This document shows, piece by piece, positions 1,776 through 48,062 of a stretch of 64,000 nucleotides of DNA. The stretch lies in contig CM060733.1 of the NCBI GenBank assembly GCA_030704615.1, positions 51,894,001 through 51,958,000 on the forward strand. The letters are read 5' to 3'. Each line of letters starts with the position of its first letter. Within the stretch, counting starts at the first letter, position 1. The notes below the pieces were generated by a model. The model worked only from the letters and a program-made list of their open reading frames with translations, was not told the origin of the DNA and made no database searches. The position numbers were made by a program, and so were the translations under genes. The DNA comes from Takakia lepidozioides (lineage: Eukaryota; Plantae; Bryophyta).

Positions 1776-3505
1776 GAGAGAGGGACAGATAGAGGGAGTG
1801 AGAGGGAGACATCAGGGGGCAACAAAGAAAAGAAAGAAGGTGGGGGGGGGGGAATGACTGAGCAACTACTGCTGCTCAGTCACTCCCCCCCCACATTTTT
1901 TTTTTCTTTGTTGCCCTCTCTCTTGGGGAAATAAAAGGGACAGATCCTACCTCTGTCAGGGGCTGACGTTGGTAGTAAGACTTACCTTCACATATAGAAT
2001 TAATCCGGGTTTTCCAGATATCCTCTAGAAATCCCTTCATATAAGCATCAATCTGCTATGTGTGATTTGCCCAAAAACTAGGCCTTAGAAGGGGCTGGGC
2101 TTTTGGCTCAGCCTCGAGACTTTCAAAGTTAGTAAACAGAGGTACATGCACAATTCCCTTGATAGATTTGAAGAGAGCGTCTCTTTGGTGAGAGAACCCC
2201 GGACAGTGTATCAGCAATGAATACTATCTTCAGGTTGCCCACACAACGGGCAATTGCACTCTCCCTTTCCTCTCTGCTTCTGTTTACTGTTCAAAGGTAG
2301 GCTTCCTACCCCGAGTTTAAATTTTAGTCTGGTACCAAGAGTGGGATAGACCCTTGAGCGCATCCATGATGTTCTCCCCCATGTCACAGATTGGAAACAG
2401 GTTCAGGGAGGTTTTCTTCCTAACATCATTTTCATCGGACAATTTTCTGGTAACAGACATGGCTTTGGACACTACACTCTCTAAGTCAGATTTATCCAGC
2501 AAGGCCAAGACTTGCGGGTCCAGATTCAGATCCTTGAGAATCTCTTCTACTCTCTTCTGCCAGGGCTTAGTCTGTTTTAACTTAGGATATCTGGTGTTGG
2601 ACATATATTGCAGCTGAACCCACCATCTGACCTTGAAATTATCTCATCGGGAGCTTAAAAGAGAGCAGCACAGAAGAGAAGGATAGAGGGAGAGGGAGAG
2701 AGGGATAGAGAGGGACATAGAGAGGGAGACATCAGGGGGCAACAAATAAAAGAAAAGAAGGTTGGCGGGGGGGGGTGACTGAGTAGCTACTGCTGCTCAG
2801 TCACTCTGCCCCCCCCACATTTTATTTTTCTTTGTTGCCCCCTCTTTTGGGGAAACAAAAGGGACAGATCCTACCTCTGTCAGGGGCTGATGTTGGTAGT
2901 AAGACTTACCTTCACATATAGAATTAATCCGGGTTTTCCAGATATCCTCTAGAAATCCCTTCACACAAGCATCAATATGTTGTGTGTGATTTGTCTAAAA
3001 ACTAGGCCTTAGAAGGGGCTGGGCTTTTGGCTCAACCTCGAGACTTTCAACGGGCAATTGCACTCTCTTTTTCCTCTCTGCTTCTGTTTGCTTATCAAAG
3101 GTAGACTTCCCGCCCTGAGTTTAATTTTCCGTCTAGTGCCGAGAGTGGGTAGACCCTTGAGGTCATCCAAGATGTCCTCCCCCATGTCATAGATTGGAAA
3201 CATGTTCAGGAAAGTTTTTTGCCTAACTTCATTTTCATCAGACAATCTCTTGGCAACAGACATGGTTGGACACTACAGCCTCTAAGTCAGATTTATCCAG
3301 CAGGGTGAAGACTTGCGGTTCTAGGTCTAGGTCCTTGAGAATCTCTTCTACTGTCTTCTTCCAGGACTTAGCCTATTTGACAGGGCGGTGGGCGGTCCTA
3401 TTTCCAAGATATAGAGTCAATTAACTTTAGATATCTGGTGTTGGACATATGCTGCAGCTGACCCCACCATCTGACCTTAAACTCATCTCGTCGGGAGCTT
3501 AAAAG
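1776..3505 (-). repeat. Tandem duplication (~0.85-0.9 kb units) of a LINE ORF2 3' fragment followed by a GA-rich hairpin
   Basis: Units at about 1776-2665 and 2670-3505 share GGGACAGATCCTACCTCTGTCAGGGGCTGA...TTAATCCGGGTTTTCCAGATATCC and both end at ATCTCRTCGGGAGCTTAAAAGAGAG. Minus-strand peptides (WW.QLQ.MSNTRYPK...VEEILKDL...TSLNLF...KLRAGSLPL...RGKGECNCPLC) resemble the post-RT/Zn-knuckle C-terminus of RTE/RTEX-type LINEs. Confidence 0.75.
1815..1925. repeat. Quasi-palindromic hairpin repeat, copy 1 of 4 (others at about 2735-2845, 3540-3690, 8480-8600)
   Basis: Arms GGCAACAAAGAAAA..G-run..TGACTGAG / CTCAGTCAC..C-run..TTTTCTTTGTTGCC, flanked by GA/TC microsatellite. Copies 3 and 4 appear inverted relative to copies 1 and 2. 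Confidence 0.75.
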
Positions 3506-8458: not shown

Positions 8459-9069
8459 GAGGGAGAGAGAGAGAGGGAGAGAGAGGGAAACCAAAAAAAA
8501 AAAAAAATGGGCCTGGGAGAGTGACTGAGCAGGTGGTGCTCAGCAGCTGCTCAGTCCCCCCCACCCCCCACCTTTTTCTTTTCTCTTTGTTGCCCCCTCT
8601 CGAGACCCCCAGCACTTGCTACTTTCACCCCCCGACATGCCTGGTTTTTTTTTTTTTTTTTTTTTTTGATCTGGATTGTGGAGGTTGTTTCCTAATGAGG
8701 CCAACTTGTGGGTTTGCATGAGAGGTGCCAACTTATGGGGAAAGAGAAGAAGTCCCTGCCCTAAAGACCCGGGGGGTGCACTCTTTATAAACTGTGCGTA
8801 TCACGTGCGTTCGTCGTCTAATAAAAAAACCCCCTGTATACGGGTCCTTGGATAATTTATACCCCCTCTGTACATATTTTTTGAAGATTATAAAACCCCC
8901 TCCTGTAAATATACAAAAATTACAATTTTTAAAAAAGTACCCCCTTCTGTTTGTATATTCTCATTTTCCATCATTAAAAATAACCCTCCAATATGTATAT
9001 GTATGTTTTTTATATTATATCGAATTTATTCATTTAAAACATAATAAAATATAACAATTAATTAAAAAA

Positions 9070-12000
9070 TTATTTGCCTTTGATAAAGTTGTCAAAGACT
9101 TTTCGGTCATTTGCATCAAGTACATATGTGTTTGACTTGACATTGTACTTTAAACATGCTAACGCGATAATGGAATCCAATCAACCATCATGTTATCCGT
9201 CAAATCGTACGTATAGACCTCTCCTCGAATTTTTTGGTACCATGCTAACCCAATCTCCATATGAGAAGGACGCTCCAATAAATCAACAGAATCCCTACAT
9301 TCTACAAACCGCTTATTGATTTTCTTCCGCATTCTTTGAACCCTGCCCAAATACCAAGTGCCTTTGGTTGCTCCTCTGTCAGGTTTTCCCTGGTCTGCCT
9401 TTTTTTGTTTGTAGTTTGGATCACAGTCTCCTCATCAACAAAAAAACAGCACAATCCGAACCCCATCCCAGCTCGTGGCTTTGTTGCTGGTAGTTGGTTT
9501 GTTTTCTCGGCAAAACAACATCGATGCACTTCTTACTCGTGTCAATCTATCCTTGGATAGAGTAGGGTTGCCATTGAGTTGGCTAACCAAAGTGCTTTTT
9601 GAATATGGTCTTCCCCTCTACTTTGACAAATGGAACCACCGCCTTCGGTCCATCTTTCTCTTGTTCAAACTCGTCAATGACAACATCCAGAGTATGTCTC
9701 AATTCACTCTGAATAAGTACCTCTTCCGCATGATCATCCAAAGATTGGCTCAAAACATCCTCCATTGAATTCGAAGGCCCGCACACCAATTCATCTTCCA
9801 CGACCTCATTTTGAATATGTGTGTCTGCATTAAGAGGACAAATAGAATCTATGGCATCGACATCATCACCCTCCCTCTCTATGCTTTTGAATAGCTCGGC
9901 CTCCATTTGTCTCTCAATTGTCCATGGCTCATTCCACCAATCCAAGTTTGTCGCTTTGTTTGGTTTCATCCCAAGTTTATGGCATAAAAGTTGCGCTTCT
10001 AGAAATCCAGTTTTCAAAGCCTCCACAATGCAATCATCCGATTGGACAGTAGAAAAGTCGGACAAATCAGCAAGGGGGATACCTGGCTTCTTCTCCAAAG
10101 AAAACCAAATGTGTTCTTGTTTCTTGTGAGCTCTTGAGAACTTGGGTCCTTTTGGATTTACCTCGAACTCGGATATGCGTGTTAATGCTCCCGCACTCTC
10201 AATCAAATCACACCCGTCATATGTCCTCTCATTCCGTAACATACCTCCCACTTTGCTGAAGAATATTTCACACACATCTGAACCAACAAGACTCAAAGGA
10301 ACTTGCACATGATTAAACTTATCCTTGAACAATTTGATAGTAGAACCACGTAGTGGCATGAAATTTGTAAATCCAAGTATGCTTCCCTGCTAATGAAGAA
10401 GGATTTCAGATTATACACCTCGTGGTGGAATAACCACAACTTCCACAATCTTAAAAAAAACGATACCTTCGCAGCAGATTGTACCCTCTCACACAATGAC
10501 ATGTGAGGAGACAAAAAATGTCGATGTAGCATGAAATGATGTATAGGTAAATTTCAGTACCTTTGGTCCTCTCCCTTCGATGATTCACAGTTGATTGTAA
10601 CTCCTCAAACAAGCTTGCACCTTCCGAGATGCCAGTCGTTGAGCTGCTGCCCAATTCTGTCGATCTTCTCTTTTGATATCACATTCCCGAAGTCCATGCT
10701 TGTCCACTGAAAATGAATGGTAGACCAATAACACATGATTCAATGTAGCAACCTCATCACCCAACACCAAAGTCCGTGATGCACTGTCCAAGGGATTTAC
10801 CAATTTTTTCCCATTGTGGATGAAGTCCTGATCATGGAGTCCGTATATATCTCCCTCGTTGCACACTCGACCTGTAAACAACCATCATTCCCAGGGATGC
10901 AAATCTACTTCCAGCCCCATTGGCATAATCTTCTAACATCACTTTTCTCCTCCTACTATCTCCGTCTGAAGCATGCCCAATTATAGGCCCAACCACGTCC
11001 CTCACATATTTGTCCCACAACTGTCTCACCACTTCCATTGTGATCTCACAAAATTGTTGTCAAATCTATTGCAAGTGAGCTGGATTACCAATACCAATCG
11101 AGGTAATCGTACATGTAGAGGATTTGCTATCAACACTCTGGCGTAATGGGCAACCACATTGTTTTTGAATGCCTCCACAATATGTTCGTACCCTGATTCC
11201 CCTTCTCTCACTTGCACCACAAAATTTGAAATACATACATGGTTGTCTTGAAGCCCACAGAACCCGAGAAGGGTGTCATCCCTAGCAATCCAACGTACCA
11301 ATCGTTTCACAACAGTTTCATCTTCGGCCACCATCACTGGGATGCTTCCCATTGGAATATTTGCATCTTCCATCACATCTTTGTAAATTCCAGCCACATG
11401 CTGAAATATATCATCCCTTTCTCCCGCTCTGTACTTCAAACCTTTCCTCAAAGACCGTCTTGTAGTATCAATAGAAGGACCCCCACATTTGAAGCCAAAA
11501 AATGATGCAATCTCGGACCCCCCCAAAGCTGCACAGTCTCAAACATTGTTTTTGTGCTAGTACCATACCTCTTCCCTTGTGGAGACCTGTCAATATTCTT
11601 GCCCATATCAACAAGAAAATCCCACAAACTTTCTTTTCCTTCAAAATCCCCCCCCTATGTGCATCAACATATCACGACAAAATTTGAGAACATCTCCTCT
11701 TTCAATTGCCTCAATCCCAGACTCCAAACTCCTACATCGCACAGACAAGGATGCCACTTTGGTCCTGGCCTCCCACAATTTGAACCTCAACTGTCTCACT
11801 CCTGTCTGTTTTTGTAAACTTGTTTGACAATCTCGACATTTCCAAGATATGACAACCTTCTTCCCTTGCCAGTATCTCTCTCCCCTCTACATTCCATGGC
11901 ACCTTTTCTCTATATACCCTCATTCTGAAGTCATTTTCCAAGGAATGAAAGAACATGCTGAACATCTCAAGTTTGGAAATGGCTCCCCATCCAATGACAC

Positions 12001-13499
12001 TCTAAAACAATCCGCGTGCCGAAACGTACCAACCCTTATGCTCTTGATTGGTTAGAGTGATGGTTGCATTTGTCAACGGCTCGACATACCACTTCTTTCC
12101 TCCCTTGCTATCTTGAAGGAATGGTTTCAGACTTATTCTCTGCTGGTTGTACTCCCACCATTCATCCCATAGGCCCCAACACAAACTGTCTCTTCCTTTG
12201 TTGCATTGGGACCTTTGCTGTAATTGTCAATCCTCGATCAGATCTGCCCGTTGGGCAGCGTCAACACAAGTGTATGGAGTTTGTGACGAGGATGCTCCCA
12301 TTGTTGATGCCACAATTGGATTGTCAAGTGGTGGGGACGGCAACACAGGTTGACTGACCAAGAAAGAGCTTAGATCCCGTTGCTTTACATCTTTGGCAAT
12401 CATAGGCTTTGGAGGCCTTCCTCTCTTTTTGCAAGGTCCTTCACTACTTCCAACCTTCTGGCAAATCTCTGCATCGACATGAGTTTTTCCTTTCACATGC
12501 TCTGTCAAAGAAGATTGCAAAGAACCTGTCCTTGGAAACAAGAGTAGCCACTTCGAATCAAGTGGGCACCTAATCCTTATGGAACCCAACTGCGAATAGT
12601 CTCCAATTGTGGCTTCCACAATCTCAAATCTGTTTCCAGGATTGTCCTCACAAAACTGAGCGACTTCCTCTAATGCCTCCTTCACCCTATTCTTCTTTGC
12701 ATCTAATGCTTCATCTGCATTTACAGGGCTGATGACACTTGTGATGAACCCGTCCCATGACGCCTCTCATAGGCTATGCGATGCCCCTCACTCCTCAAAT
12801 GAGATCTCATAAAGTTTGCACATGCATTATATGGTTGTTGTTTTCCCATACTGTGCATAAACATCCTCACACTCAACACACCATATGTGGAACATTGCTT
12901 GTCCTTGTTGATCCTTTGTCATCAGCTCAAACTTGTCACATCGTCCTTCTGCAGAGATTTTCCTTTCAACGGCTCTAATCTCTTTCTGCCATTTTTGAAT
13001 ATCGTTGGATGTAGCCAATGTGCTGCACAATCTACCAGATCTCTGCTGAAGTGCATGCTCATGTGCATGGTCTTCATTTCCACCATCGCCAGCAAAGGGT
13101 GTATCAGGGTCCATCCTCATCTTGGTAGACACTGGTGCCGGGTCCTCGCGTGGTCTGTCCTCATGCAAGATCGTAGAACCACTGGAAGATAGAGGTCTTT
13201 TTTCAATCCTTGGTCCCCATCATTTTGGTCTGAAATCTTAATGTGTACAGTATCCCTTTCAGAACCATCCTCTCTTCTTGTTTGGCTGAAAGGACACTAC
13301 CCCCCATGGAAAGGAAATGAAATTTTTCTGAGACAAGCTCATCACCTATAATTTCTGCTCGGATGCATTTTATGTGACACCTTGCATAGTGAACACAGAA
13401 CCAAGCATGTTTGGTGATGCCATCTCCTCCCACAAGCAGGACTTTTACTTCCAACTCTTCTTCCATGATGAGTTCACCTGCAAATGCAAATGAAAACAT
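9070..13499 (-). pseudogene. Frameshifted DDE transposase with P-element/THAP9-like core motifs and N-terminal Zn-finger-like motifs
   Basis: Consecutive minus-strand ORF pieces give AEDET..L.GFCG (D ~11321), GHASDGDS (D ~10965), DQDFIHNGKKLVNPL (DxxH..K..N ~10820), DRQNWAAAQRL and GSDVCEIFFSKVGG (E ~10268). Order and spacing match P-superfamily motifs. At least 5 frameshifts. N-terminal WCVEC...H and IRCP...EHVKGKTH. Possible further spliced 5' exons to about 13975. Confidence 0.75.
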
Positions 13500-14649
13500 T
13501 TCAAATCAGACCTTGATAGACCATAACAAAGCACCCGGGTTGGAAGGTTCCAAGTCTTGTTTTATACAACCCTAATGCTGTCCAAGCAGGACTACGTTGA
13601 AAAGAGATGAAATATACAGAAGCAAGTACCTGATTGATGAGTTTGACGTTGCTAATTTTTGCTACTGCTATTGACCAAATGCTGCTACTTCCACTACTGG
13701 TAGCCCTCTTTGGGTGATCCTGAACCCACAGTCCATCCTTGCATCAGCGGCTAGCCCTCCCTCCACACTAACATATTTAAATACAAAGTTCTGTCAAACT
13801 CCCTACGATGTTGCATGAAGAAAGCTCACCTTGTTGACAATATTGTCCCACCGCTGTGGATCAAATTTATAGAACTCCTGCCAGCGCTGTTCCTTGCTCC
13901 AAATCTGGCCCTCTTGGATGATTTTGCACCCACGATCCTCTCCCTGCATCAACAGCTACCCCTCCCTCCACACTAACAATGCGTACATCATGCCTCTACA
14001 GCTACTACTGTGGCTTCCAGTTGACCATCTACCCATGCAGGTTTCTTGTAGCTATCCTTCCACATGGAATCATAGGTAATCTGGAGCTTGGAATCCGCCA
14101 TCTAGAAATTTAGGGACGACTCTGATAACAGGGAAAAACAGGCTGAAATGTGTTGAAGAAGGTACCTTCATTAGCAATCCCTTGTTCTATCTATTGCGCT
14201 GCTGCCGCTGCTATTTCCAGTTGACCATCTACTCACACTGTCCCACCACTGACTGGGGTCAGAAAAGTATTAATTCCTTGAAAGCTTCTCTCCATCTCTA
14301 TTATCTTTTTTTAGGTACTGTCATGCTACCACCTCGGCAGTAACTTGCAAAGTCACTCCAGAGCACCGCAGATCCACCCAACGAGCTAACTTACAAAATT
14401 CAATACATATGCTTCAGGGCTGAGTCTGATGAGAGGGAAAACCAGGCTGAAACAGGTCAAACCAGAAGGTGCCCTCAGGCTGAAATACGTTGAAGAAGGT
14501 ACCTTTCATCAGCAGTGCCTTGCTCTATCAATTGCGCTGTTGCCACTGCTGTTTCCAGTTGACCATCCACCCACATTGTCCCACCATTGACTGGGGTCAG
14601 AAAAGTGTCTCATTCCAAAGCTTCTCTTCATCTTTGTGGTGCTATTGTA

Positions 14650-15290
14650 GGGTGACTTCAATGCCCAAGTGGGCAAAGGGCTCCATCAGGACGATATCAT
14701 TGGGTCTTCTGGTGAGGACGAGCTGAATTCTAATGGCAGACGGTTAATTAACTGTCTAGAAGAGCTTCAGCTTTTGACCTTGATTAACAAGACAAGAGGT
14801 GACCAAGTGCAGTGGACTCGTGAGAAATCCCAAACTGGGGAACGTTCCATTGTGGACTATATCATAATGGACAAAAATTTGTTCCCCCAGTGTGCCAATG
14901 TGTTGATCGACAGAACTGATATTGGTACCTCTGACCACTTCCTGGACTGAGATCAAAAGGTGTTTTCCCAAGGCTAGAGTAGAAGAGATTCTCAAGGACC
15001 TGGACCTGGATCCGCAAGTCTTGACCCTGCACCCTAAATCCAACTTAGAGGTTGTAGTGTCCAAAGCCATGTCTATTGCCATGAGATTGTCTGATGAAAA
15101 TGAAGTTAGGCAGAAAACTTCCCTGAACTTGTTTCTAGTCAGTGACATGGGGGGAGGACATCTTGGATGACCTCAAGGGTCCACCCACTCTCGGCACTAG
15201 ACTGAAATTTAAACTCAGGGAAGGAAGCCTACCTTTGAACATCAAACAGAAGCAGAGAGGAAAGGGGGAGTGCACTCTCCCAAGTGAACC
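14650..15290 (+). pseudogene. LINE ORF2 fragment: APE endonuclease C-part fused directly to the C-terminal region (RT missing)
   Basis: GDFNAQVG..NSNGRRL..SIVDYII..GTSDHF, then WTEIKRCFP|RVEEILKDLDL..TSLNLF..TRLKFKLREGSLPL. Confidence 0.8.
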
Positions 15291-16533
15291 TGCATCATTC
15301 AGTTGGCAAGCAAGTGTCTGAAAAATTGATCCATTTGAAGACACCACGGTGCAGCTGAGCACGGCCTGACATGACAACAATTAAACATCATACTGAGACA
15401 AGAGAAGCAGTCAAGGACACAGTCATGCATATGGCAGCAAGTGATCACCCTTCAAACATGATTGAAAACATACATGAGGTCAAAGGCAATTCGAAATCAG
15501 CGAAGGGTACTGCAGCTAAGAGTTGGAGTGTCTTTAAAGACAAAGGGAAGAGAAAGAAACACTTCACTGGCAATGAGGGGAGGCTGTGGAAACGCCAAGA
15601 TGATGACACAAATGATAGAAATAACAGGGTTGGGCAAAGGATCTTGCAGGAAGAAGAAAGGGTATGTCAGCATGGAAAGGACGTGCAGCTCATTCCAACG
15701 GAAAGGGGAACATTCGTGCAGTTAAGTACAACAACCAATTGCCCTTCAATTATGGCTGGAATTTTCCAAAAGGCGAGGGATGATAAGGAGGAGAATAGGC
15801 CTGATACAGTGAGTTGCTTAGGGGCAATGAAACAACTTTCTTTTGAAGAAATCAGCAATTACACAAGCAAGGGAAGGAAACTATAGTCCTTGTATGTGAA
15901 AGGAGGGTAATACGGTGCAAGTGCAAAAGGAAGGGAGGCACAAGGAGGTCACTTACTGCTAATTGGGATATGCTAGAGATCACAAGAAGGGAACATGGGT
16001 ACCCAGTAAGCAGAAGAGCAGCTGAGCAGGTGTGGGATGATGTTCGGGCTGCAAACACAACGGCGAACCAAGCAACTGTCACTACAACTAAAGATACGAG
16101 TAAGTGGAGCAACATGATGGCAGCATGGAATATCTGCCGAGGGATGCTGGTTGGCAAGGAGCTGCGACATATGGTGAATGAGGAGAGAGACCTGTCCCGA
16201 ATCAACATGGTTCAAACACGATCTGAAAGATGTAAAGAAAAGGTGCATTTGAAGGCAGAAGGGTATTATTTTCAGACTGGTGAAGAGCCTAATTACACAA
16301 GGGAAGAACGAGAAGGCAAGCAAGGAAAAATCTCACAAGCGGAAATGCAACCCTAAACGGCGAAAGTAGAACATACACGACGAGCACTGGAGAACATACC
16401 CATGAAACGTCGAGCATGAGCACCACGTGCAGTGAAGGGAAGAATGTATGGGGGGCAGCAGTTATAACTGAACTACAAATGCGTTTGCTGCACTCAGTGA
16501 CGGAAGAATACGGAGGAGCGGCGAAACTGCCAT

Positions 16534-16800
16534 ATGTGTTTATCTATGGACATTGGACACAAAAGAAAGGATGTTGGGCGCACCTGCGATTCATGGAAAA
16601 CCAAAAGACAACAGGTGTCGATAGATTGCGGAGTTAGTGGAGCTCAGGACATTCTGCCTGAGTATGTGAGACTTCCTACAGACAATAAGGGACATTTTTT
16701 CACAGTGCGTCTAATCGAAGACTGCTCTTCAGCAGTCTGCTTCAACTGCAGTCAAATGCTCCACATTAAGGTGGATTGCCCAACAAGAAAGAGAAAGCTT
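16534..16800 (+). pseudogene. Gag/LINE-ORF1-like CCHC zinc-knuckle fragment inside element 1
   Basis: CFNCSQMLHIKVDCP fits CX2CX4HX4C. Confidence 0.5.
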
Positions 16801-19544
16801 TCTCCAGCATCCAAGCTGCCACTGGGCAGCCAAACTAGAGGGTCAAATGGCAGGGTCTCCCTCCAGTGCAACAACAACAATCAAGTGCTCAATCCCAAGA
16901 TCTCCGTTCTTCGGCCCAAACTCTTCCCCCCAGTGATCACTTGCAAGTTGCGGGCAGTAGAGGTGCCTTCCAACGCCATATCAGCAATCAGGACCCTATG
17001 CAACTCGAAGCGGCATCCACCCCTCGCAGGCAGCCACTTGGCAAGAAAGATAGCAGCAGAGCTGCTGCACAAATCAAACCCTAAACTCCATCAGCACAAA
17101 AAGCTATGCCTTCTATGGTGGTCCACTCTCCAAAATTCTTACCAGTATTGCAAACAATCCATCTTTTGCAAAAACTTGCCTCAGGCAGGCTTCATTTCCA
17201 GGCCAGGACCTGAAAGGGTGCTCAGCCCTGGAATCCACGGAAGCGTCATTAGCAACATGTGTCACGCCAATCATTTATAAGAAAGGAAATAGGCCTAATG
17301 TGCTCATTACCTCTGATGACTAGGAATCTAGTGCCCTCACCACATTGTCCTACCATGCCCTGTGGAGAGGAGGGGAGAGGAGAGGAGGGAAAAGAGAAAG
17401 CCCGCGGAAGGGAAGGCGAACGCGGGAGAGGAGGAGAAAGAAAAGAGAAAGCCGCGGGAGATCAGGGGAGAAAGATCGTGGAGCGAAAAAAAAAAAAAAA
17501 CAAACAAACTAAACGACGATCCCACGATTTGATCCCGGGATGCATCGCGGCAAAATCGCCATTCTTACCACTACACTATCCCTTAAAACTCAACAACCCC
17601 CTCCTGTAAAATTATATTTAAGGTGTTTTAAACCCCCCTCTGTATGTATAATGTTGTACATGGGGGGGTTTAAAATACCCCCTCCTGTGCACGCACGTGG
17701 CTGGTACATTTAATGAGGAGTGCACCCCCCAGGCCTAAAGAAAAGGGCGGACAATCTGTTTGCTCTGCCAGCACGTGTGACGCGCCAGGGCGTCTCACGT
17801 TTACCAGCCCCGTCGACAACCGCAGCCGGAGGGCTCGTCTGCCCCCCCCGAGGCCAGTACCCCCCCTCTTGTCCCCATCTTGGATGCGCCAGGGGCCAGC
17901 TCAGCCAACTCTCTTATTCGGGAGGTTGTTGCAGAGCCGGATGCTCAGTTGAGCACACCCCCGGCCACCAAGATGGGTGAAATGTACCTTGGCAAGCACA
18001 TCGCCCGTTCGGGGGCCCGGTAATATGGGCAACTTTTGGATGTCACCGGGGGATAGCGACCCCTTCCTCCGTAGCGAAGGCTGCACTTGCCAAGGCCCAA
18101 CGTCAGGTTCAAGGGCCTTTGAAAGTGGTCGTTGCTAGCCCAATGTTGTCGATGAGGGAGGAGGAGACAATGAGGGCCAATGAAGTGGCCGAGATAGCGA
18201 AGCGCCTCAAAGTAGTCAAGCCGGGTGAGGGCTTCTACCCTGCTAAGCATTTGGCCTGGGGGGTGCACTCCTCATTAAATGTACCAGCCACGTGCGTGCA
18301 CAGGAGGGGGTATTTTAAACCCCCCCACGTACAACATTATACATAACAGAGGGGGGTTTAAAACACGATAAATATAATTTTACAAGAGGGGGTTGTTGAG
18401 TTTTAGGGGGTAGTGTAGTGGTAAGAGCGGCGTTTAGGCCGCGATGCACCGCGGGATCAAATCGCATAATCATTCTTTTGTTTGTTTGTTTGTTTTTTTC
18501 TCTCCGCGATCTTTCTCCCCTTCCCTCCTGCGGCTTTCTCTTTTCCCTTTCCTCCTCTCATCTCCTCTCCACTCCTCTCCCGCGTTCGCCTTCCCTTCCG
18601 CGGGCTTTCTCTTTTTCTTCCTCTCCTCTTCCCTCCTCTCCACAGGGCATGATATTCTTCTTGATGTTTACAAGGTTTAGGGGAGAGTGAGCTTGGTCTT
18701 AGCAGGCCATTTTGTGGTGGTTTCTCAAAGACCAATCCGACATTACCTGACTACAGACACCAGCAGCACACCAAAGCGATCCTTTTGGGTTGATGGGAGG
18801 GCAAATCCTCCATGGGTCATGACACAAGGTCAAGGACAATGTGGTGAGGGCACCTTCTCCTTCGACCTATTTCAGCCTGTCTTGCCCTCTCATCATAGTC
18901 GGCCCTGAATTTGCAGCACTGAGCAGACCTGACATGAGTTTTTAGAAGATTGACAATGGTGGGACAACTGCAATCGCAAGGTGTGGCGTTTTCTTAAGGT
19001 ACGATGTGAATTTTTTTCCATCCTACTATTGCGGGCTCTTGCCTCCTGTTAGTACCTGATTTGGTATTCTTCCAGATGTTTACAAGGTTCTTGGGAGAGT
19101 CAGCTTGGTCTTAGCAGGTCGTGCTCAGCTGCACCGTGGTGGTTCTCACTGACCAATCCGTCGTTACCTGACTACAGACACAAGTAGGCACACACAAGAG
19201 GTCCTCTTTTGATCTTAGTCCAAACCAGGAAGTGGTCAGAGGTACCAATATCAGTTCTGTCGATCAACACATTGGCACACTAGGGGAACAAATTTTTGTC
19301 CATTATGATATAGTCCACAATGGAACGTTCCCCAGTTTGGGATTTCTCACGAGTCCACTGCACTTGGTCACCTGCAGTTGAAGTCCTTGCCCTTGGTTGT
19401 CTTCCTAGAGCGCCCCATTGAATCACCAATGTCTAAGACCGCTCTCCAGCCAGTTAAGGGACGAACTTCTTTGAGATTGAATTGATGTGGGACTCTATTA
19501 GAATCACTTTTGGTCATTGCAACCTTCAACGTACACCTGTTATC

Positions 19545-20756
19545 AATGAGAGAACCCCAGACAGTGTATCAGAAAATGAATACTGTCTTCAGATTGCCCA
19601 CACAATGGGAAGTGCACTCTCCCTTTCCTCTCTGCTTCTGTTTGCTATTCAAAGGTAGGCTTCCTGCCTTGAGTTTAAATTTCAGTCTAGTGCCGAGAGT
19701 GGGTGGACCCTTGAGATCATCCAAGATGTCCTCCCCCATGTCACTGACTGGAAACAAGTTCAGGGAAGTTTTCTGCCTAACTTCATTTTCATCAGACAAT
19801 CTCATGGCAACAGACATGGCTTTGGATACTACAGCCTCTAAGTCGGATTTATCCAGCAGGGTCAAGACTTGCGGATTGAGAATCTCTTCTACTCTGGTGT
19901 TGGGAAAACACCTCTTGATCTCAGTCCAAACCAGGAAGTGGTCAGAGGTACCAATATCAGTTCTATTGATCAACACATTGGCACACTGGGGGAACAAATT
20001 TTTGTCCATTATGATATAGTCCACAATGGAACGTTCCCCAATTTGGGATTTCTCACGAGTCCACTGCACTTGGTCACCTCTTGTCCTGTTATTCAAGGTC
20101 AAAAGCTGAAGCTCTTTCAGACAGTTAATTAACCGTCTGCCATTAGAATTCAGCTTGTCCTCACCAGAAGGCCCAATGATATCATCCTAATGGAGCCCTT
20201 TGCCCACCCGGGCATTGAAGTCACCCAATAGCACCACCTGACCTTTGGCAAGGAACGAAGCACAATCCAGTTTTACATCTTCGAAGGCTTTGTCTGCATC
20301 AGCACTAAGGGTCCCCTCTGTGGGCATGTAAACACAACCCACAAAGAGGTCCTTCGTACTCATGCCGCCCTTCAGATTCAGTTTTAGCCATATACTATGC
20401 TCATACCTCAAACCCTTGTTGATAATTTCACAATTGTCAAACAAGAAATCACGGACAAAGAATCCAACCCCTTTTTGACCGCGTTTGGCAAAGGCTGCCT
20501 TGAGAGTACACATCTTACCTGCCCATTTATAACCATTGACATCTCCAACCAGTTTATCCGACATTTCCCATGTTTCTTGCCCAGCACAGATATGAATATC
20601 ATGAGTCCGAAGAACTTGTCCTACTTCGAGTTGTTTCCTTTGGTTGGTCAACCCTGAGAAGTTGAAAGTGGCCAGCCGCAAGCCAACCCTTTGCATGTGA
20701 ATTGTTTGTCGTCTAGGTAGCTTGTGATTGCTCCTGGACGGCCAACCGTTCTGCAA
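19545..20756 (-). pseudogene. LINE ORF2 derivative: APE endonuclease fused to C-terminal Zn-knuckle region, RT deleted
   Basis: RLATFNFSGL..QET..VYMPTEG..LLGDFNARVG..SIVDYII..SDH (endonuclease motifs), then the same junction to VEEIL..KLKAGSLPL..GECTSHC as in element 1. In-frame stop at about 20187. Confidence 0.8.
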
Positions 20757-21145
20757 AGGGGGGACAGTTACCCCATGGATTCAACCTCATCCAGAGCATC
20801 AAACCGATTAGAAACTCTCAAGTTGAAGTCCTTGCCCTTGGTTGTCTTCCTAGAGCGCCCCATCGAATCACCAATGTCTAAGACCGCTCTCCAGCCAGTC
20901 AAGGGACGAACTTCTTTGAGTTTGAATCGATGTGGGATTCAATTAGAAGCACTTTTGGTCATTGCAACCTTCAACGTACCCCTGTTATCAAGTCTCGAGA
21001 TAGAACCATTAGCCATGAAATCCAAGCCTAAGCTAGAGCATGTAGTTTTTAAAGATATAGAGTCGATGTTTCCAAGATATAGAGTCGATTAACTTAGGAT
21101 ATCTGGTGTTGGACATATGTTGCAGCTGACCCGACCATCCGACCT

Positions 21146-23323
21146 TTGAATTCATTTGTGTGCGTGTGCAAGCCTGCATCCATAAAAAAGGGCAAAGAGG
21201 TGCATGGTTGCATCACCAAAGCTGGACTTGTACCGGATGTGATTATGAACAATACCCTTGTGGACATGTATGCCATTGTGGGAGCATTGAGGATGCGGAG
21301 GGAGTGTTCAACACTATGGCTGAACGAGGTGGTGTCGAGGAACACGATTCATCCAACAGGTCGATTTTAAACACAAGATTACTTCTGATTCCCTGCGGAT
21401 CAATAGCTACAAGAAAGTTGCGTGGGTAGATGGTCAACTGGAAACAGCAGCCGCAGCAGTGCATTTGGTAGGACAAGGCGCTGCTAATGAAGGTACCTTC
21501 TTCAACACATTTCAGCCTGTTTTTCCCTGTTATCAGAGTTTTTCCCTGTTTTTTCCTGAATGATGGATAGAGAATGGGTCCAAATTTATCCAAGAGGGCT
21601 GGACTTCAAGCTCCAGATTACCTTGATTTCATGTGGGGGTCAGTAGCTACAAGAAACCTGCATAGGTAGATGGTCAACCAAAGGCAGCAGCTGCAGCGAC
21701 ACAGTTGATAAAATCAGGCACCTCAACCATGACCACAGCTTCTGAAAGAGGATCAAGAGAGGGAGTCCACAATGCCTCTTCTGGCACTTCTAGGCATGTG
21801 AAGATACTTTGTGCGACAGCCTGACAGAGGCTCTACAGACTCTAAACCAAGGAGGCAGTTCAACAGATTCAGATATGTATGTCTGTCTCTTGCTTAAGTG
21901 CATCAAGATGGAAGGTCTCGAAGCTGGAAAGCAGGTGCACACTCACATTATCCAAAGTGGATTCACGCCAAATGTTTTTCTACTCAACACCCTTGTCAAC
22001 CTAAGTGCCGGAACATCAGGGATGCTCACCAAGTGTTCAACGGAATGCCTCAATGATCTTTGATCACGTGGAATATTATGTTGAAAGGATTTACCAAGCA
22101 TAGGTGTGGTAGGATTGTTTTGGAGACATATGAGCAAATGATGTGCGAAGCGGTGAAGCCCAACCATATCACATTTGTTTGTGTTTGCAATGCGTGTGAA
22201 AGCCTGGGAGCAAGCTGGAATTGTACCAGATGTCATCTTGAACACTGCCCTTGTATGTTTGCCAAATGTGGGTGCGTTAAGGATGTGAGGGGAATTTTCA
22301 ACACTCTGGCTGAACGAGATGTGGTGTCGTGGAAGGTGATGCTTGCAGGGTATGCACAGCAGGGGCAAGGGATGGAGGCTTTGGAGACCTATGAGCAAAT
22401 GATGGGGGAAAGGGGTGAAGCCTAACCACATCACAAGGCATTTCACCAGATTCAGATATGCATGTTTGTCTCTTGCTTAAGTGCATCAAGATGGAAGGTC
22501 TGGAAGCTGGAAAACAGGTGCATACTCACATCATCCAAAGTGGATTCACGTCAAATGTTTTTCTACTCAACACCCTTGTCAACATGTATGTTATGTGTGG
22601 GAGCATCATTGATGCTCACCAAGTGTTCAACAGAATGCCTCAATGATCTTTAATCACGTGGAATATAATGTTGGCAGGATGCAATGCGTGTCCAAGCCTG
22701 CGAGCTCTGGAAAAGGGGAAAGAGGTCCATGGTGACATTGTCAAAGCTGGAATTGTACCAGATGTCATTCTGAACACTCCCCTGGTGGACATGTATGCCA
22801 AATGTGGGTGCATTAAGGATGCGAAGGGAGTTTCCATGGCTGAACGAGATGTGGTGTGGTGGAGTGCGATGCTTGCAGGGTATGCACAGCAGGGACGTGG
22901 TATGGAGGCTTTGGAGACCTATGATCAAATGATGGGGGAAAGGGTGAAGCCCGACCACATCACATTTGTGTACATTTGCAATGCGTGTACAAGCCTGTCA
23001 GCTCTGGAAAAGGGCAAAGAGGTCCATGCCGACATTGTCAGATTTGCAATTGTATCAAATGTCATTCTGAACAATACCCTCGTGGACATGTATGAAGGGA
23101 GTGTTCGACGGTATGACTGAACGAGATATGTTGTCGTGGAGTGCGATGATTGCAGGATATGCACAGCAAGGGCGCGGGATGGAGGCTTTGGCGAATGTGT
23201 GGTGATTGCCACACAGCCACCAAATTCATCTCAAAGATAGCTAAGCAAGAGATTGTTGTACGGGATGCAAACCGCTTTCACCACTTCCAAAATGGTGTTT
23301 GTTCTTGTGGGGAGTATTGGTGA
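21146..23323 (+). pseudogene. Scrambled PLS-class PPR gene fragments ending in a DYW-domain C-terminus
   Basis: PLS motifs (GKQVHTHII, NTLVDMYAKCG, ERDVVSW..ML.GYAQQG.GMEAL, PDHITFV) with frameshifts and internal duplication (~21860-22110 vs ~22445-22680). 23192-23323 encodes [44 protein letters not shown] domains and the HxE motif are missing. Confidence 0.9.
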
Positions 23324-26009
23324 AATGAAATGTTTGTCACCTCATTGAATGTATTGAACTCTGTCAGCTGCGAGTCAGGTTGGACTCCAACAGTGGCAGC
23401 AAAGGCGCACGAAATCTCTTTTTGGAGAGGAATTCTCAACAGTAGGTTTTGAACATAATTGGACCTTGCGAAGGTTGAAACTGTAGAACAAGTTCAGAAA
23501 CTGTCCTAGTTGATGAACAGAGGTGCAGTGACTAGGTCTTGATGGTCTTCAAGAGGGTCACTCTCTGATGAAAATACCCAGGACTGTATATCAGAAAATA
23601 GAAACTTTCTTCAGGCCTCTTGCACATCGGGCATTGACAATGTCCCTTTCCTCTCTGCATCTGATTATTGTTCAAAGTGAGATTCCACAGCAAGTTTTAT
23701 CGAGGGCAAACAAATTTTTTTATTAATTTATTAGATTTTATTCTATTTTTAATGAATAAAATGATATAATATAAAAACATACATATACATATTTGAGGGT
23801 ATTTTTTAATTATTGAAAAGGGAAATATACATATAGAAGGGGGTATTTTTTAAAAATTACAAATTTCTATATATTTACAGGAGGGGGTTTTATAGTCTTC
23901 AAAATGTATGTACAGAGGGGGTATAAATGATCCAAGGACCCGTATACAAGGGGTTTTTTTTATTAGGCGACGAACGCATGTGATACGGACATTTTATAAA
24001 GAGTGCACCCCCCAGGGCATTTGGGGGGGGGGGGGGGAGGAGGAGGTATGGGCCGGTTTGGAGCGGCCTAGTCGATCAGCGACGCCGCCCCCTGAGCCTG
24101 AGTAGTCAGCAAAGAAGGGCCTGGACTACGGGGCGCCGCCGCCGGCTATGCTCCACATCTGGAACCTACTTACAGTGGCGCTCCGGGAGGGGATAACGCG
24201 GGCATATCCGGCAACGGGGACTCCTGCAACATTGGGTGACACTGGGGCGAGTCAGACAAGCTTGCAAAGGTACCCCTGTCGCACCTTGTTCCATTTTTTG
24301 TCCTTTCATTTGCATGCATGATTTTCTTTGTTGTTTTTTTTTTTTTCTTGAATTTGGGGGGGTTATTTGTCTTCAGGAGGCAACAACATGGCTGGCCTCA
24401 TTGGTGCAGTCTAGTGGGGTTGCCAATGAGGGAGAGCACGTGGTGCTCATGAAAGACCCGAACACCAAAGGTAAGAAGAAGATGCCTCGACCTCCCGAGA
24501 TCCCTTTTAACATCAATGAAATTGCTGCCGAGGAGAGAGAGAAAAGGGAGAGGGAGAAGGAGAGAGAGGAAGTAGCGGGGAAGGGGAAGGAGATGGTCGG
24601 GAAGGAAAAGAAGAAGAAGAAAAAGAAGTCCCATGGAGAGGAAGGGATGAGTGTGCATGCGAGGGATGACAATGGGGTAACAAAGGAGCAGGGGAAGGAG
24701 GCTACAAAGAAGGGAGAGAGTGGGAAGAAGAACATGGCCTTGGCGATAGAAGACGTGGAGTTGGCAAAGATCGTGGTGCCACCGGTGGAGGTGAATCGCC
24801 ATGGTGACCCCTACGGTGCGTTCTGGGAGGCTATGAAGAAGCCAGCCTTCGAACTCACAATGAGGTGGTTCCTTTTGCACATTGAGTGGGCTGATCAGCA
24901 CTTTGGCGCGAAGCGGGCGTATGCCCGTGAGTTAGACCGCCGGTTTCAGACAATTGGAGTGACACAAGGGTGCTGGAGATGGTGGGGCGAAACTTGAAGG
25001 ACGGGAGGTACCGTGCCAGACAGATCATTCGGAGGGCAATGGAAAAGGGGGCCATACCCAAACCACCTTATGGAATTACACAGGTTGGTAAATCCTGAAT
25101 CATTTCACCTTCTGTTTGTCGCATGTGCATTAATGAGGTGGATTCGATGCAACGTATGTGTGTAATTCACTAATTGTTGGGGGGGGGGGGGGGGGGGGGG
25201 GGATAGGTATCGTGGGATGCACTCATTGCGGGAGAGAATGATGCGGCAAACATGGCCAAATTTGAGCGGGCACGCGAAGCAACAACAGTCCGCCTTGACA
25301 AGCACGAATCCACACACAAATGGGGTGCCGACGGATCCAAGGGTTTTATCTTGCGATTTGTAAGTCATACTTCCCTATGTATTTTGTTATGTCTTCTTTC
25401 TGGCTCCATCCCTGCTCTATCATCGTGAAGAACTGACTTTAATTTGTGGCATGTGTAGCAACGCGCATTTGAGAGGAAGCCATCTCCGACAGAGTACAAC
25501 TATGCCAATGAGCATGGTTGACAATCTTTCATGAAGAACATGGCCAACACGGAGGGGATGAGTGCACTACAGGGCAGTAGTATGGATGAGGGCGGGGGTC
25601 ATGGCCAGGGATTGGATGCGAGCTCTGTGGGACTTAGGGGAACGCCGCCTCCTTTAGGTGCTCTGGCAAAGGGCGCGGAGTCATCAGGCTCATCGGATAG
25701 CTCTGAGTCCTCCACTGAGGATAAGGATGAGGATGACTAGTCCTAGTCCATGTAGGTCCCAGGGTCAGCCTACTGAACCCTTGTAAGGTTTTCAGCTTAT
25801 TTCTTGTAAATATATTTCCATATTCCATCTTCCATCTTATTCATGTGTCACACCGTCCTCACCCTCGATTCATGCTTGCTCAATTGTGTACCTGCTAAAT
25901 CAGAGAAATGGAAGCTGTCAGGTCTCCCTCCCCCAAAACAAAACCAGGCAGAAAACAAAAACCACTCCCAATTCACCCCCAAAATCAACCCCAACCCTCC
26001 CCAGGCTAG

Positions 26010-34753: not shown

Positions 34754-37386
34754 TGTGCGCATTCACAATCGGCAGTTTGACTCTCATAATCGGCTGTTTG
34801 ACTTTTAGCGGCTCATTACGGCCTGTAGGCCTCATAATCTAACGGCCTCGCCCTAGGGACTCCACTAGGAGCCAAAATGCGCCCAAATATACCCGGCCTA
34901 CACTGATAAATACCTTAAAAGAAACGTTACCGCGCAGTCCATAGAGGCAGCTTCCTCCCATTTCCTTTAAGGGAAAAAACAAGGCGCTCCGCCACAAGAG
35001 GCTGTCCTTGCTCTTTTTGGTGATTTTGGGGTTGTTGTTTTATACTTTTTCCACAGCTTCATGAATCATGCCCATCAACCCTCCGTAGACTAGGCTTAAT
35101 GGATAAGCCTAGTTCTCCCCAAGGCACCTCTATCCCTTGCGGGACAGAGCCAAAAAAAAGACAGAATCTTTGTTTTCATCAACCCTAAACCTACGGTATA
35201 GTGCAGCTTGGGTGTTTAGGGTTTGGCTGTTTCCATGTACATTGAGCGATCCTCAGTGTCACCGGATCAGTGCGAGATCCTCGTTCTGGATCAGAAGCTG
35301 CTGATTCAGGAAATGGGCACTACAGAGATTCAAGTAGTTGCAGTACCTACTCCGAATTCTCCAACCGATCATCACGCTCACAGCTGTGGTCAATCACAAG
35401 ATAGGGGCTTGCAAATTTGGAAAGCTCAAGCTGCTACAGCAGTTTGTCCCTTGTGCAGATGGCGGTGGCAGCAAAGCACACAGCGCTGTCGCCTACCTAC
35501 AGTCCACCACTCACTCTGGACAAAAATTGCGTATTCAATGGCTAAGTGTATTGGACTGTATCACACTAAAAACGAGGCTGCAGGCGTTGCACTTTGTCTC
35601 CTAGTTCTAACATCCCTTCAGTGCTGCTGAAAATCTCCTGGAACTTCATAAATTTTTGCATGCATACGTACAATAAGAGCAGTAAGATGGTCCAAGCTGC
35701 TATGAATTCACCGAGCATATAAATCTATCATTATCTGTCTGAGTGCCACATGGCTTTGAAATCAACAGTAATTTCATCCCGCACTACTAGGAGGAGCAAC
35801 TTCTAGCCTCCTTCTAGCCCTCCTTCGAGCCATTGTGGACAAATTGTTTTTGGAAAGATACTGTCCACAGATCTCTTTATTCAAGACAACTGCTGGCTAA
35901 ACGGCATATAGGATCTGTACATTGTAGAAATCTTAACGGAAGAATGTCAACAAATCTCCGAATGATAGTCACGGTGGGCTCCATGAAGTAACAAAGCTTG
36001 AACACGCTTGACCACTGGAGGACGTGGCTATAATACTGATCCACTAAGAATCCTCAGATGCTAGCACTTGTTTCGAACGACCCGCAGATTCAGTTTTGAA
36101 GAACATATATGGAAAATGAAGTGAAGCAGCCTGATTAGCAAACAAAACATATGATCTGAACGAGGTTAGAGTCAACACGACGGTGGAGAGTATGACGTTA
36201 TACTCGAGCGGAGATGGCAAACATTACCCACTTCAGGGCCTGGGAGTAATATTCTATCAACCAGGGCAGAGATGTGGGCGGTCTGCGTAAGGGAGGGCGC
36301 TGCCGGCTAACCAGAAAGGCCTGCACTGCTTTCAGTTATCGGTACAGATCACAGGATGATGTGCCGAGGTGGGACTGTATCCCGAAGCGGTCAGTTGTAC
36401 AGTCTTAACATCACCTTCTGGATTCTATGATCATGTGTTTGTACGTGTACTGTGTAATTGTGGCACTGCACGAGTCCAAGTCTCCAAGATCAGTACTCAT
36501 GGGGTCTGTGTTATTAGCTTACGCTGCGCTTTACTGGTGGTAGCTGAGAGATGGAGTAGAGGTGCAAGCGCCGCTCTTGTTCTCTGCTTTGATAATTATC
36601 ACAAGTGTAGTTACCGTCTCTAGACGTTTTCAAGAGTGTTGAAGTTTTAGTCTAGATACGTTGAAAACTGTACAGCAGTTACAGCTCCTGATCTTCTCCT
36701 GACAAGTTTTGGACGGGATTTGTTTGCTGTTCCCAGTTGTCAAAGTACCTCCTACACGTTCATCACTAAGACTAGGTAGTCTGATCTCTCTATGATAGAA
36801 TTTCATGTGCGCTTCTCGAATTTCACAATTGAAAGTAGTGCGCACTTGGTTTGGAGTGGTCAGCTTGACCAGCAGTTCGTAAACCACATTAATCGTGTCC
36901 AGGTGTTGGAAGCGATTTAGTTTCAATCTAGCAATATGTCTATTCTCGGTACTCCATGGAATTGATCAGTGGCCGACAATCTCCTCCAGTATGCTGTTTC
37001 ATTTTGTACTTCAACCGCTCAGGTTTCATGATTCATCAACCTAAGTTTAAGCTTTGAAGTTGGTTTGTAAATGAGGGAGCCTGTGAGGATTTGGATGTCC
37101 AGTTATATTATACTGCAGTCGGGGCATGCAGCTCAGGTGTTTTAGATTGACCTCCGACCGGTTTGAACAATGTTATATAGTGAGGGCCTCATCTCGGCAT
37201 GATGATTGCTCGTTTGTGGAGAGCAAAGACTTGGTGAGAGAAGCTAAGATTTTTGAGAATGGGTGAGCGGTGAAACCTGAAGGGGGTACCGTTGTGCTGT
37301 GTGTCTGACCAGTTATCCCATACACCGGAGAAGGGCTTGGAGAGGGTAGCATTGCCGGATTGCAGGGACATGGCAAGGAGAATGAG

Positions 37387-46829: not shown

Positions 46830-48062
46830 AAGCACACACCACTGGGGGTGATGGAAAGGCCACCAAAGAACAAAGACCCCTACCTGATCCAGAGGTAAGA
46901 GACTTGCGCCTGCGGCAGATGGTAATACTCTGCAGGGGTGTGTTTTCTTAGCCCGCCACGTCACCCGTGGTACCCGGCCTTACCAATCTCGCCTTTACTG
47001 GTCTGCCCCCTTTTGTTTGTCATTGACTTGAATGGATGAATCGAGTGGATGAATATTCAAACTATAAATGGACCTAGGGGACCATCTTGTCATTAATTTC
47101 TCACAAACTTTGGTGCAATGGCCTCTCTCGCGTCTCACAAGGAAGCGATGGAAGACAAAGTACTTGCTCAAGATCTTTAGTCGTCCAATGTGATGGAGTT
47201 TGAAAGGAAAAGTGAGTAGAGCCACATATAGATCCATTGTAGAGGAAGTACCTTCAATATCACAGTGCAAAGTGCTGATGTATAGCACATATTATATAAT
47301 GCACAGTGACGAAAAAATAGGGTGAACTGAACTTACCGATCATAAACTTTCTGCTCAAATAATACAACATCTCTTTGGACGACATCACCTGCGAGCAAAG
47401 TGTCCCATATCAATGCTTCGACCCATGTTTTGATGGAGGCTTTGATGAAGCTGACATCCATGCAGGGGGTAATTACCTGTGCAATTGATTGAGAATGTTG
47501 CCCTTCCGTATGAGGCTTCACCGCCTCCATCTTTATGCTACACAAATGAAAAATCATTATTTTAGCCACATCTTATAACTTGAATGGTGTAGAAATGTGG
47601 CAATGTCCCTAGTTCATCCGCCTCTCTCTCGCTCTCTCTCTCCGCAGACGTTATAAAGCACCATTTCATTTCATCTCTCTCTCTCTCTCTCCCCCACCCC
47701 CAAGCGCAGTTTAGCTTCCATCGCTTCCTTGTGAGACGCGAGAGAGGCCATTGCACCAAAGCTTGTGAGAAATTAATGACAAGATGGTCCCCTAGGTCCA
47801 TTTATAGTTTGAATATTCATCCACTCGATTCATCCATTCAAGTCAATGACAAACAAAAGGGGCAGACCAATAAAGGCGAGAGGGGTACCACGGGTGACGT
47901 GAGCATAGTGTGGCCCTTTAATTTGGCGGGCTAAGAAAACACACCCCTGCAGAGTATTACCCTCTACTGTAGGGGCGAGTCTCTTACCTCCGGATCAGGT
48001 GGGGGTCCTTCTTCTTTGGTGGCCTTTCCATCACCCCCAGTGGGGCACTTGTGTGTGTGCTT
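46830..48062. mobile_element. Long-TIR (~320 bp) Pack-MULE/foldback-like element with captured gene fragment
   Basis: 46830-47154 and 47715-48062 are highly similar inverted arms. The 560-bp spacer holds two spliced exons. TSD not found. Confidence 0.8.
47337..47537 (-). pseudogene. Captured two-exon fragment HKDGGGEASYGRATFSINCT/GDVVQRDVVLFEQKVYDR
   Basis: Exons 47537-47477 and 47388-47337 have canonical AG/GT boundaries and join in phase. From memory, the peptide resembles the 'SF.INC.GD.C.GDVVLF.Q.VY' block of plant SAP/CCCH-62-like proteins. Confidence 0.65.

Follow-up and report, generated by a model that had tools for sequence, protein, structure and literature searches.

Introduction

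The P element of Drosophila, which belongs to the P superfamily with THAP9, Galileo and 1360, is the closest described system to the element studied here, an 8,966-bp sequence at 8768-17733 of a 64-kb stretch of DNA from the bryophyte Takakia lepidozioides (contig CM060733.1, positions 51,894,001 to 51,958,000; the whole stretch is called the window, and coordinates are positions within it). The transposases of P and THAP9 have in common with that of the present lineage a coiled coil preceding a helix-turn-helix (HTH) and a split RNase H domain with a helical insertion, the DDE triad, the D(2)H motif and a DxxE that holds the third catalytic residue. The likeness extends to 8-bp target site duplications (TSDs), ends that start with C (3' terminal G) and internal repeated sites. 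From a single gene Drosophila P obtains both short repressors and a long transposase, intron retention yielding a 66-kDa repressor (PMC7776569). Short and long products of one gene are likewise proposed here, with a conserved leaky stop as the control where P uses IVS3. Unlike P, the present lineage has no THAP domain but two C2H2 fingers, a PIP-like motif and a BAH/Tudor-like tail. Its transposase is 1,400-1,500 residues long versus 751 in P, its terminal inverted repeats (TIRs) begin CCYGGGGGG and measure 16 bp versus 31 bp in P, and it is missed by the Pfam P models, with 14% identity to P transposase.

Readthrough of a stop codon is known from the Gag-Pol genes of retroviruses and of the long terminal repeat (LTR) retrotransposons Tj1, Tosmo and Tca2, in which a single in-frame TGA-CT stop makes for less enzyme than upstream protein (PMC10085805); these systems are alike in that respect but are retroelements. 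In the literature searched, outside which most subscription journals lay, no published case of readthrough came to light for a eukaryotic cut-and-paste or DNA transposase. As to plants, a 2023 review named seven TIR superfamilies, P not among them (PMC10741241), and a Pfam-based screen of 1,007 plant genomes in 2025, which looked for P, reported only those seven (PMC12973397). An older compilation lists P in all groups, land plants included (PMC4438587), and the presence of P in land plants alone is not unprecedented. Fungal P elements are known and rare. GingerRoot (PMC6839031) is similarly scattered over non-seed plants and aquatic animals, corals among them, but its transposase is integrase-type and unrelated. 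The more surprising point is the conserved leaky stop: judged from sequence, the element is probably a P-like transposon in which the balance between a short binder or repressor and the full transposase depends on programmed stop-codon readthrough.

A conserved in-frame stop in the transposase gene

The transposase gene occupies about 13466 to 9070 of the minus strand, and its features are as follows.

12230..13466, minus strand: upstream reading frame, about 410 codons, frameshifted
12880-12781 and 12568-12479, minus strand: two C2H2-type fingers, which align with those of relatives
12430-12407, minus strand: AT-hook-like KRGRP
12382-12359, minus strand: PIP-box-like QRDLSSFL
12221..12229, minus strand: in-frame TGA followed by CAATTA (CARYYA readthrough context)
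9070..12226, minus strand: downstream reading frame, about 1,050 codons, with CxxC module, coiled coil, HTH, split RNase H with helical insertion, and C-terminal domain
11314..11328, minus strand: AEDET, first catalytic Asp, 100% conserved
10943..10969, minus strand: SDGD, second catalytic Asp
10795..10833, minus strand: DQDFIHNGKKLVN, the D(2)H motif of P transposases
10255..10284, minus strand: GSDVCEIFFS, third catalytic residue E (98% conserved), with a D three residues earlier like P D528/E531
9073..9599, minus strand: C-terminal domain with two helices and an SH3-like barrel, BAH/chromo/Tudor-like (Z 6.9, under the trust level of the tool)

The earlier note had reported a frameshifted transposase with its motifs in order, and the whole series was located on the minus strand (AEDET at 11328, SDGD at 10969, DQDFIHNGKKLVN at 10833, RQNWAAAQ at 10662 and GSDVCEIFFS at 10284). 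Compared with an intact relative, the downstream frame carried about 13 frameshifts as well as stops, with pieces 42-72% identical; because of these frameshifts, the copy at 8768-17733 is dead. Among 103 sequences the catalytic positions were strongly conserved (D269 100%, D388 99%, D434/H437 95/97%, E621 98%, D618 90%), D618 being the equivalent of D528, which contacts GTP in P transposase (PMC7776569). Of the traits behind the GTP cofactor and the 17-nt staggered cleavage of ends in the P superfamily, this residue alone was identified.

The window stop, which the earlier note had not mentioned, lies at 12229-12227 (TGA CAA TTA), where the frame holding finger 2 and the PIP-like motif continues in frame into a conserved LCWG motif. 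By itself such a stop would signify little in so decayed an element. We found an in-frame stop at the same place in nine loci (the window and eight related ones), 286-321 codons before the first catalytic Asp, in the following contexts.

Window: TGA CAA TTA
L001: TGA CAA TCA
L123 and L125: TGA CAA GAA
L124 and L127: TGA CTA T
L128: TGA CTA G
L130: TGA CAC
L129: TAG GGA

Eight of the nine stops were thus TGA-C, with CAA four times, CTA three times and CAC once; the context was CARYYA in plants and CUA, CAA or CAC elsewhere. In these regions 10% of stop triplets are TGA-C, and the occurrence of TGA-C in 7 of 8 independent loci gave p about 1e-6, a post hoc value from which shared ancestry was not removed. 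Four of the stop-bearing loci were fetched after the idea had been formed; the stop was in frame in all four of these and TGA-C in three. The window context is the tobacco mosaic virus (TMV) hexamer, and that of L001 is the Arabidopsis eRF1-1 context TGACAATCA, shown to read through (PMC5397192); UGA-CUAG, as in L128, is an efficient readthrough context in animals (PMC4132726).

It is scarcely credible that the stop is ordinary decay of dead copies whose context is shared by chance. The window copy and L001 do hold many other nonsense changes, but the site is shared at the same position, as TGA-C, by proteins 30-45% identical, and the stop is the sole break in about 1,380-1,550 codons of the otherwise intact frames of L123, L125, L128, L129 and L130. 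The true terminal stops of these five were TAA or TAG with no C at +4, and the other stops in the frame of L001 never had C at +4.

The same stop point marks the borders of annotated proteins. About 55 predicted proteins start directly downstream of it, some of them intact, 1,047 residues long and closely related to the window copy, and relatives of the upstream protein terminate at it. Gene callers annotate two genes, and in some loci an ATG lies 8-35 codons from the stop, as would be expected if the finger and catalytic parts were two separate proteins made by reinitiation, a non-AUG start or a second promoter, in the manner of the two-ORF Harbinger, Kolobok and IS3EU (ORF, open reading frame). 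We consider this quite improbable, in that the frame is always the same on both sides and relatives with a single open ORF show the product to be one polypeptide. Moreover, the first ATG after the stop was 96 codons away in L123 and 171 in L125, past conserved motifs, and the stretch between stop and ATG in these two loci had third-position-biased changes (26:11:10). A conserved in-frame stop, a leaky context and coding conservation downstream, the features that define programmed readthrough, were therefore found together.

Several observations weigh against programmed readthrough. The stop position is open in the Calypogeia subclade and a few others, at least 7 relatives in all; the stop of L129 is TAG-G; and many further lesions mark the window copy. 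Mapped on the tree, TGA-C required several gains or losses. The loci were picked from proteins starting near the stop point, and related loci are not independent. A 13-bp-stem hairpin about 9 nt after the stop was found in the window (z -2.3), but when the RNA downstream of the stop was compared across relatives only the window folded well, and a conserved downstream structure was rejected as a family feature. The repressor role of the short protein is argued by analogy with P. Finally, L126 has an AT-rich GT-AG intron at the stop position (L126:180-300), whose retention leads to an immediate stop, and a frame-preserving GT-AG pair of 141 nt spans the stop in the window.

The last two points favor the main rival explanation, that the stop lies within a regulated, retained intron like Drosophila IVS3 and that splicing makes the full transposase. 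The P element itself uses this strategy, the window pair is in frame (GTCAGT...TTACAG), and L001 has a CAG 9 nt after its stop. However, no good frame-preserving intron was found in L123, L124, L125, L127, L128 or L130, and the window candidate lacks a pyrimidine tract (0.41). An intron would need neither both sides in frame (1/3 each) nor a conserved TGA-C. A retained intron is possible for the window copy and real in L126, yet it leaves the conserved frame and context of the other loci unexplained, and we regard it as unlikely to account for the family.

Under programmed readthrough, which we prefer, one mRNA would encode an upstream protein of 330-430 residues with two C2H2 fingers, an AT-hook in plants and a PIP-box-like motif, ending at the conserved UGA in its leaky context. 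Most ribosomes would stop there and yield a DNA-binding protein without a catalytic domain, likely a repressor or end-binding helper by analogy with the 66-kDa and KP proteins of P. A few would read through to give a transposase of roughly 1,400-1,500 residues, which may bind the subterminal repeats, excise the element and insert it with an 8-bp stagger. Some sublineages would have lost the stop, leaving an open ORF, and one would rely on an intron at that position. GTP use, binding to PCNA and a chromatin-reading function of the BAH-like tail can be suggested more tentatively. If the leaky stop is real, the element limits its own enzyme at the level of translation, in parallel to the splicing switch of P, and databases that split or truncate these proteins are accounted for. 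Intact copies, namely the open Calypogeia ORF and the single-stop animal-side loci, allow a direct test of this and are candidates for new transposase tools.

Ends of the element and placement in the P superfamily

The earlier note had described 16-bp TIRs and a perfect 8-bp TSD, and both held up, with ends at 8768 and 17733 and CCTAAAGA on both flanks. The ends comprise the following features.

8768..8783, plus strand: TIR at the 3' end of the transposase gene, left end CCCGGGGGGTGCACTC
17718..17733, minus strand: TIR at the 5' end of the transposase gene, right end read in reverse CCTGGGGGGTGCACTC
8760..8767: left copy of the TSD, CCTAAAGA, perfect 8 bp
17734..17741: right copy of the TSD, CCTAAAGA, perfect 8 bp
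8826..8907, plus strand: three ACCCCT(C)CTGTA-like subterminal repeats (8830, 8862, 8897)
17594..17688, plus strand: three subterminal repeats of the ACCCCT(C)CTGTA-like motif (17598, 17634, 17679)

The two TIRs, 16 bp each, differ by one mismatch, and a perfect 8-bp TSD is expected by chance at 4^-8 = 1.5e-5. Exact matches to the TIR elsewhere in the window were confined to the two ends of a second element at 18255-24016. The ACCCCT(C)CTGTA-like motif was present in 2 or 3 copies per element end in both window elements and was rare elsewhere in the window, and these repeats are candidate binding sites for the zinc fingers. P elements as a rule terminate in 5'-CA; the ends in the present lineage were CCY or CTC followed by G-rich sequence, with only the first C in common.

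The fold was compared with known transposases by using an AlphaFold model of the relative P0209 (pLDDT 84; 41% identical to the window core). The model matched Drosophila P transposase (6p5a) with Z 26.4 and rmsd (root-mean-square deviation) 4.2 A over 405 aligned residues, chain range 137-566, all four modelled P domains being aligned over these residues, and with a Foldseek E of 9e-10. The next families were far behind, with Z 11.6 for Transib, about 10 for RAG1, 8.8 for Hermes (rmsd 8.2) and 8.3 for the MULE-like ISCth4. Language-model features placed the lineage at 0.95 to THAP9/P clusters. Its neighbors in the ESM Atlas were THAP9/P clusters together with unnamed basidiomycete and rotifer clusters, which grade into Pfam-positive P clusters; among predicted structures the basidiomycete and rotifer clusters came closest, with a TM of 0.77 by target over residues 133-970, a range that takes in the tail. 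The C-terminal 130 residues form an SH3-like barrel in the fold of the relative, best matched by BAH, then chromo and Tudor, all at Z <=6.9, so the BAH/Tudor likeness of the tail is suggestive only. Thus the P-type fold (in P0209), the DDE triad along with the D(2)H motif (also in the window) and a TSD of 7-8 bp, which characterize the P superfamily, were all present, and the superfamily assignment of the earlier note was supported.

Other superfamilies, several of which the earlier note had named as possible groupings, were examined and rejected. As that note, which saw neither CxxH nor RW motifs, had argued, the element is not hAT, given DxxH instead of CxxH, the poor Hermes match and no hAT Pfam match. 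MULE/IS256 was rejected on the ISCth4 score, the lack of a MULE Pfam match and a TIR of 16 bp versus long TIRs; Transib/RAG, whose ends are CAC, on Z 11.6 and an 8-bp versus 5-bp TSD; Kolobok on a variable 8-bp TSD versus TTAA; and KDZ/Zisupton on the lack of any KDZ/CxC Pfam match in 26 members.

Pfam gave no match at cutoff on window pieces or full relatives, P models appearing only weakly in 2 of 26 members each (PF21787, E 0.0022; PF12017, E 0.0078), and a profile search against PDB sequences found no match. No THAP domain was matched, and two C2H2 fingers stood in its place, animal-side loci included, as the earlier note had proposed for the window element. Since THAP is restricted to animals (PMC7776569), its absence excludes the canonical P family but not the P superfamily. 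A superfamily of its own, as yet unnamed, with the P-type fold but distinct from P, would fit the missing Pfam and PDB matches, the 14% identity, the lack of THAP even in animal members, the different ends and the extra domains. Against it stand the alignment of four modelled P domains over 405 residues, the retained D(2)H and DxxE motifs, the atlas neighbors grading into Pfam-positive P clusters, and the 8-bp TSD, and we consider it improbable. In its workings the lineage resembles the P superfamily, of which it is most likely a member, while it fails the tests of the canonical P family (THAP, CA ends, Pfam). Our data support the view that the element is a decayed DNA transposon of the cut-and-paste type, whose clade, a deep one in this superfamily, lacks THAP. 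Because the clade is invisible to Pfam models, P-type elements of non-seed plants are missed.

Relatives and distribution

Window pieces were used as separate search queries, and an X-joined core was used only for trees. The pieces retrieved 467 proteins at E < 0.001 and the profile search 131; the homologue search from upstream proteins returned only 3. The named relatives belong to a liverwort (Calypogeia fissa), a fern (Adiantum nelumboides), Amphiura, Mytilus and Clytia; the majority of the rest came from metagenome or read assemblies, with hosts inferred from the tree. The Calypogeia protein and unnamed relatives joined the window copy in a clade with full support, adjoined by clades of animal proteins (the tree was midpoint-rooted, for drawing only). 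No relatives were found in viral contigs, prokaryote genomes or phages. A scan of metagenomes for the TIR pattern gave 119 stretches, and none of the 80 compared resembled the element ends or transposase; these matches are chance.

The loci of relatives had the same anatomy as the window element. Calypogeia has an intact 1,529-codon ORF bounded by CCCTGGGCCC/CTCTAGGCCC ends and an 8-bp duplication, and CCCGGGGGGG(G) ends with 8-bp duplications were found in L123, L124, L127 and the miniature element of L127 described below; L125 had no matching pair. The tally of TSD lengths suggested by the earlier note gave 8 bp in 7 of 7 bounded elements, the two window elements included. That note had placed the element in a land-plant P lineage with new termini. 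Neither the lineage nor its CCCGGGGGG ends are peculiar to land plants, however: in loci grouping with proteins of Amphiura, Mytilus and Clytia, relatives have such ends and 8-bp TSDs around them. The fold, G-rich ends that start with C, and TSDs of 8 bp are common to relatives from a liverwort, a fern and marine invertebrates. Two CxxC...H.....H fingers were present in both plant and animal-side members, an RGRP AT-hook-like motif in plant members, and in the upstream part a QxxLxxFF-like motif that we take to be PIP-box-like.

Animal members may already be catalogued in Repbase/Dfam. Taking the lines of evidence as one, we hold it evenly balanced whether the lineage is an undescribed cross-kingdom P-type clade (bryophytes, ferns, cnidarians, molluscs, echinoderms, probably fungi) that would be the first eukaryotic cut-and-paste transposon under programmed stop-codon readthrough. 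Its contexts would be tuned to the host (CARYYA in plants, UGA-CUA/CAA in animals), readthrough would be interchangeable with intron retention in evolution, and PCNA-binding and BAH-like chromatin-reading modules could steer insertion.

Three further observations concern the relatives. A 330-bp miniature inverted-repeat transposable element (MITE; L127:5408-5738), which has CCCGGGGGG ends like the rest of the family and is flanked by an 8-bp TSD, lies beside an autonomous-type copy. The distant members P0075, P0255 and P0086 have an extra C-terminal domain, either a Ulp1 SUMO protease (PF02902) or a Tudor domain (PF21743). At L002:13387-18730 a CACTA-type transposase (PF02992, PF13960), possibly nested, is found directly downstream of a relative's gene.

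Cargo, the second copy and other features of the window

Outside the transposase gene, the first element and its neighbor contain the following.

13481..17351, minus strand: ~3.9 kb of cargo between the 5' end of the element and the start codon, with pieces derived from long interspersed nuclear elements (LINEs) and local repeats
14636-15282: LINE endonuclease fragment in the cargo
18255..24016, plus strand: second, non-autonomous copy, in opposite orientation to the first element, with perfect 16-bp TIRs and without transposase
18247-18254 and 24017-24024: TSD of the second copy, GCATTTGG, perfect 8 bp

The cargo possibly lies within an intron of the 5' untranslated region (UTR), since a donor-like site is present near 17351, where similarity to the second element stops, and an acceptor directly precedes the start codon. 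Within it, a 259-codon ORF with a CCHC zinc knuckle (16501-17277, plus strand; E 0.004) is probably LINE ORF1 debris.

The second copy is 521 bp from the first element, and the ends of the two are 86-87% identical over 324 and 404 nt. It carries several PLS-type PPR fragments at about 21100-23200 and a nearly whole LINE endonuclease at 20780-19572, with one stop and no reverse transcriptase seen. Pack-MULE and Pack-CACTA are non-autonomous TIR elements with host gene fragments; the second copy is a derivative of this Pack type, with PPR fragments and P-type ends, that has lost its transposase. It suggests a possible route for the shuffling of PPR repeats. A LINE-endonuclease-derived segment, 85-91% identical among 14636-15282, 19606-20237 and 2189-3352, is present in both elements and outside them, and is therefore either a repeat in its own right or one captured on more than one occasion. 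A unit of 200-340 bp also recurs within both elements (13703-14633, 18845-18912 and 21363-21678).

The window further contains two host genes, one for a USP-domain protein kinase (37360-45000, plus strand) and one for PMI1/PMIR (49150-54647, minus strand); together with the PPR repeats, these are in keeping with a land plant. Its other repeats are a 96-bp tandem repeat at 42372-42657, a pair of 147-bp direct repeats at 44849-45215, and a pair of 330-bp inverted repeats (88%) at 46839-48043.

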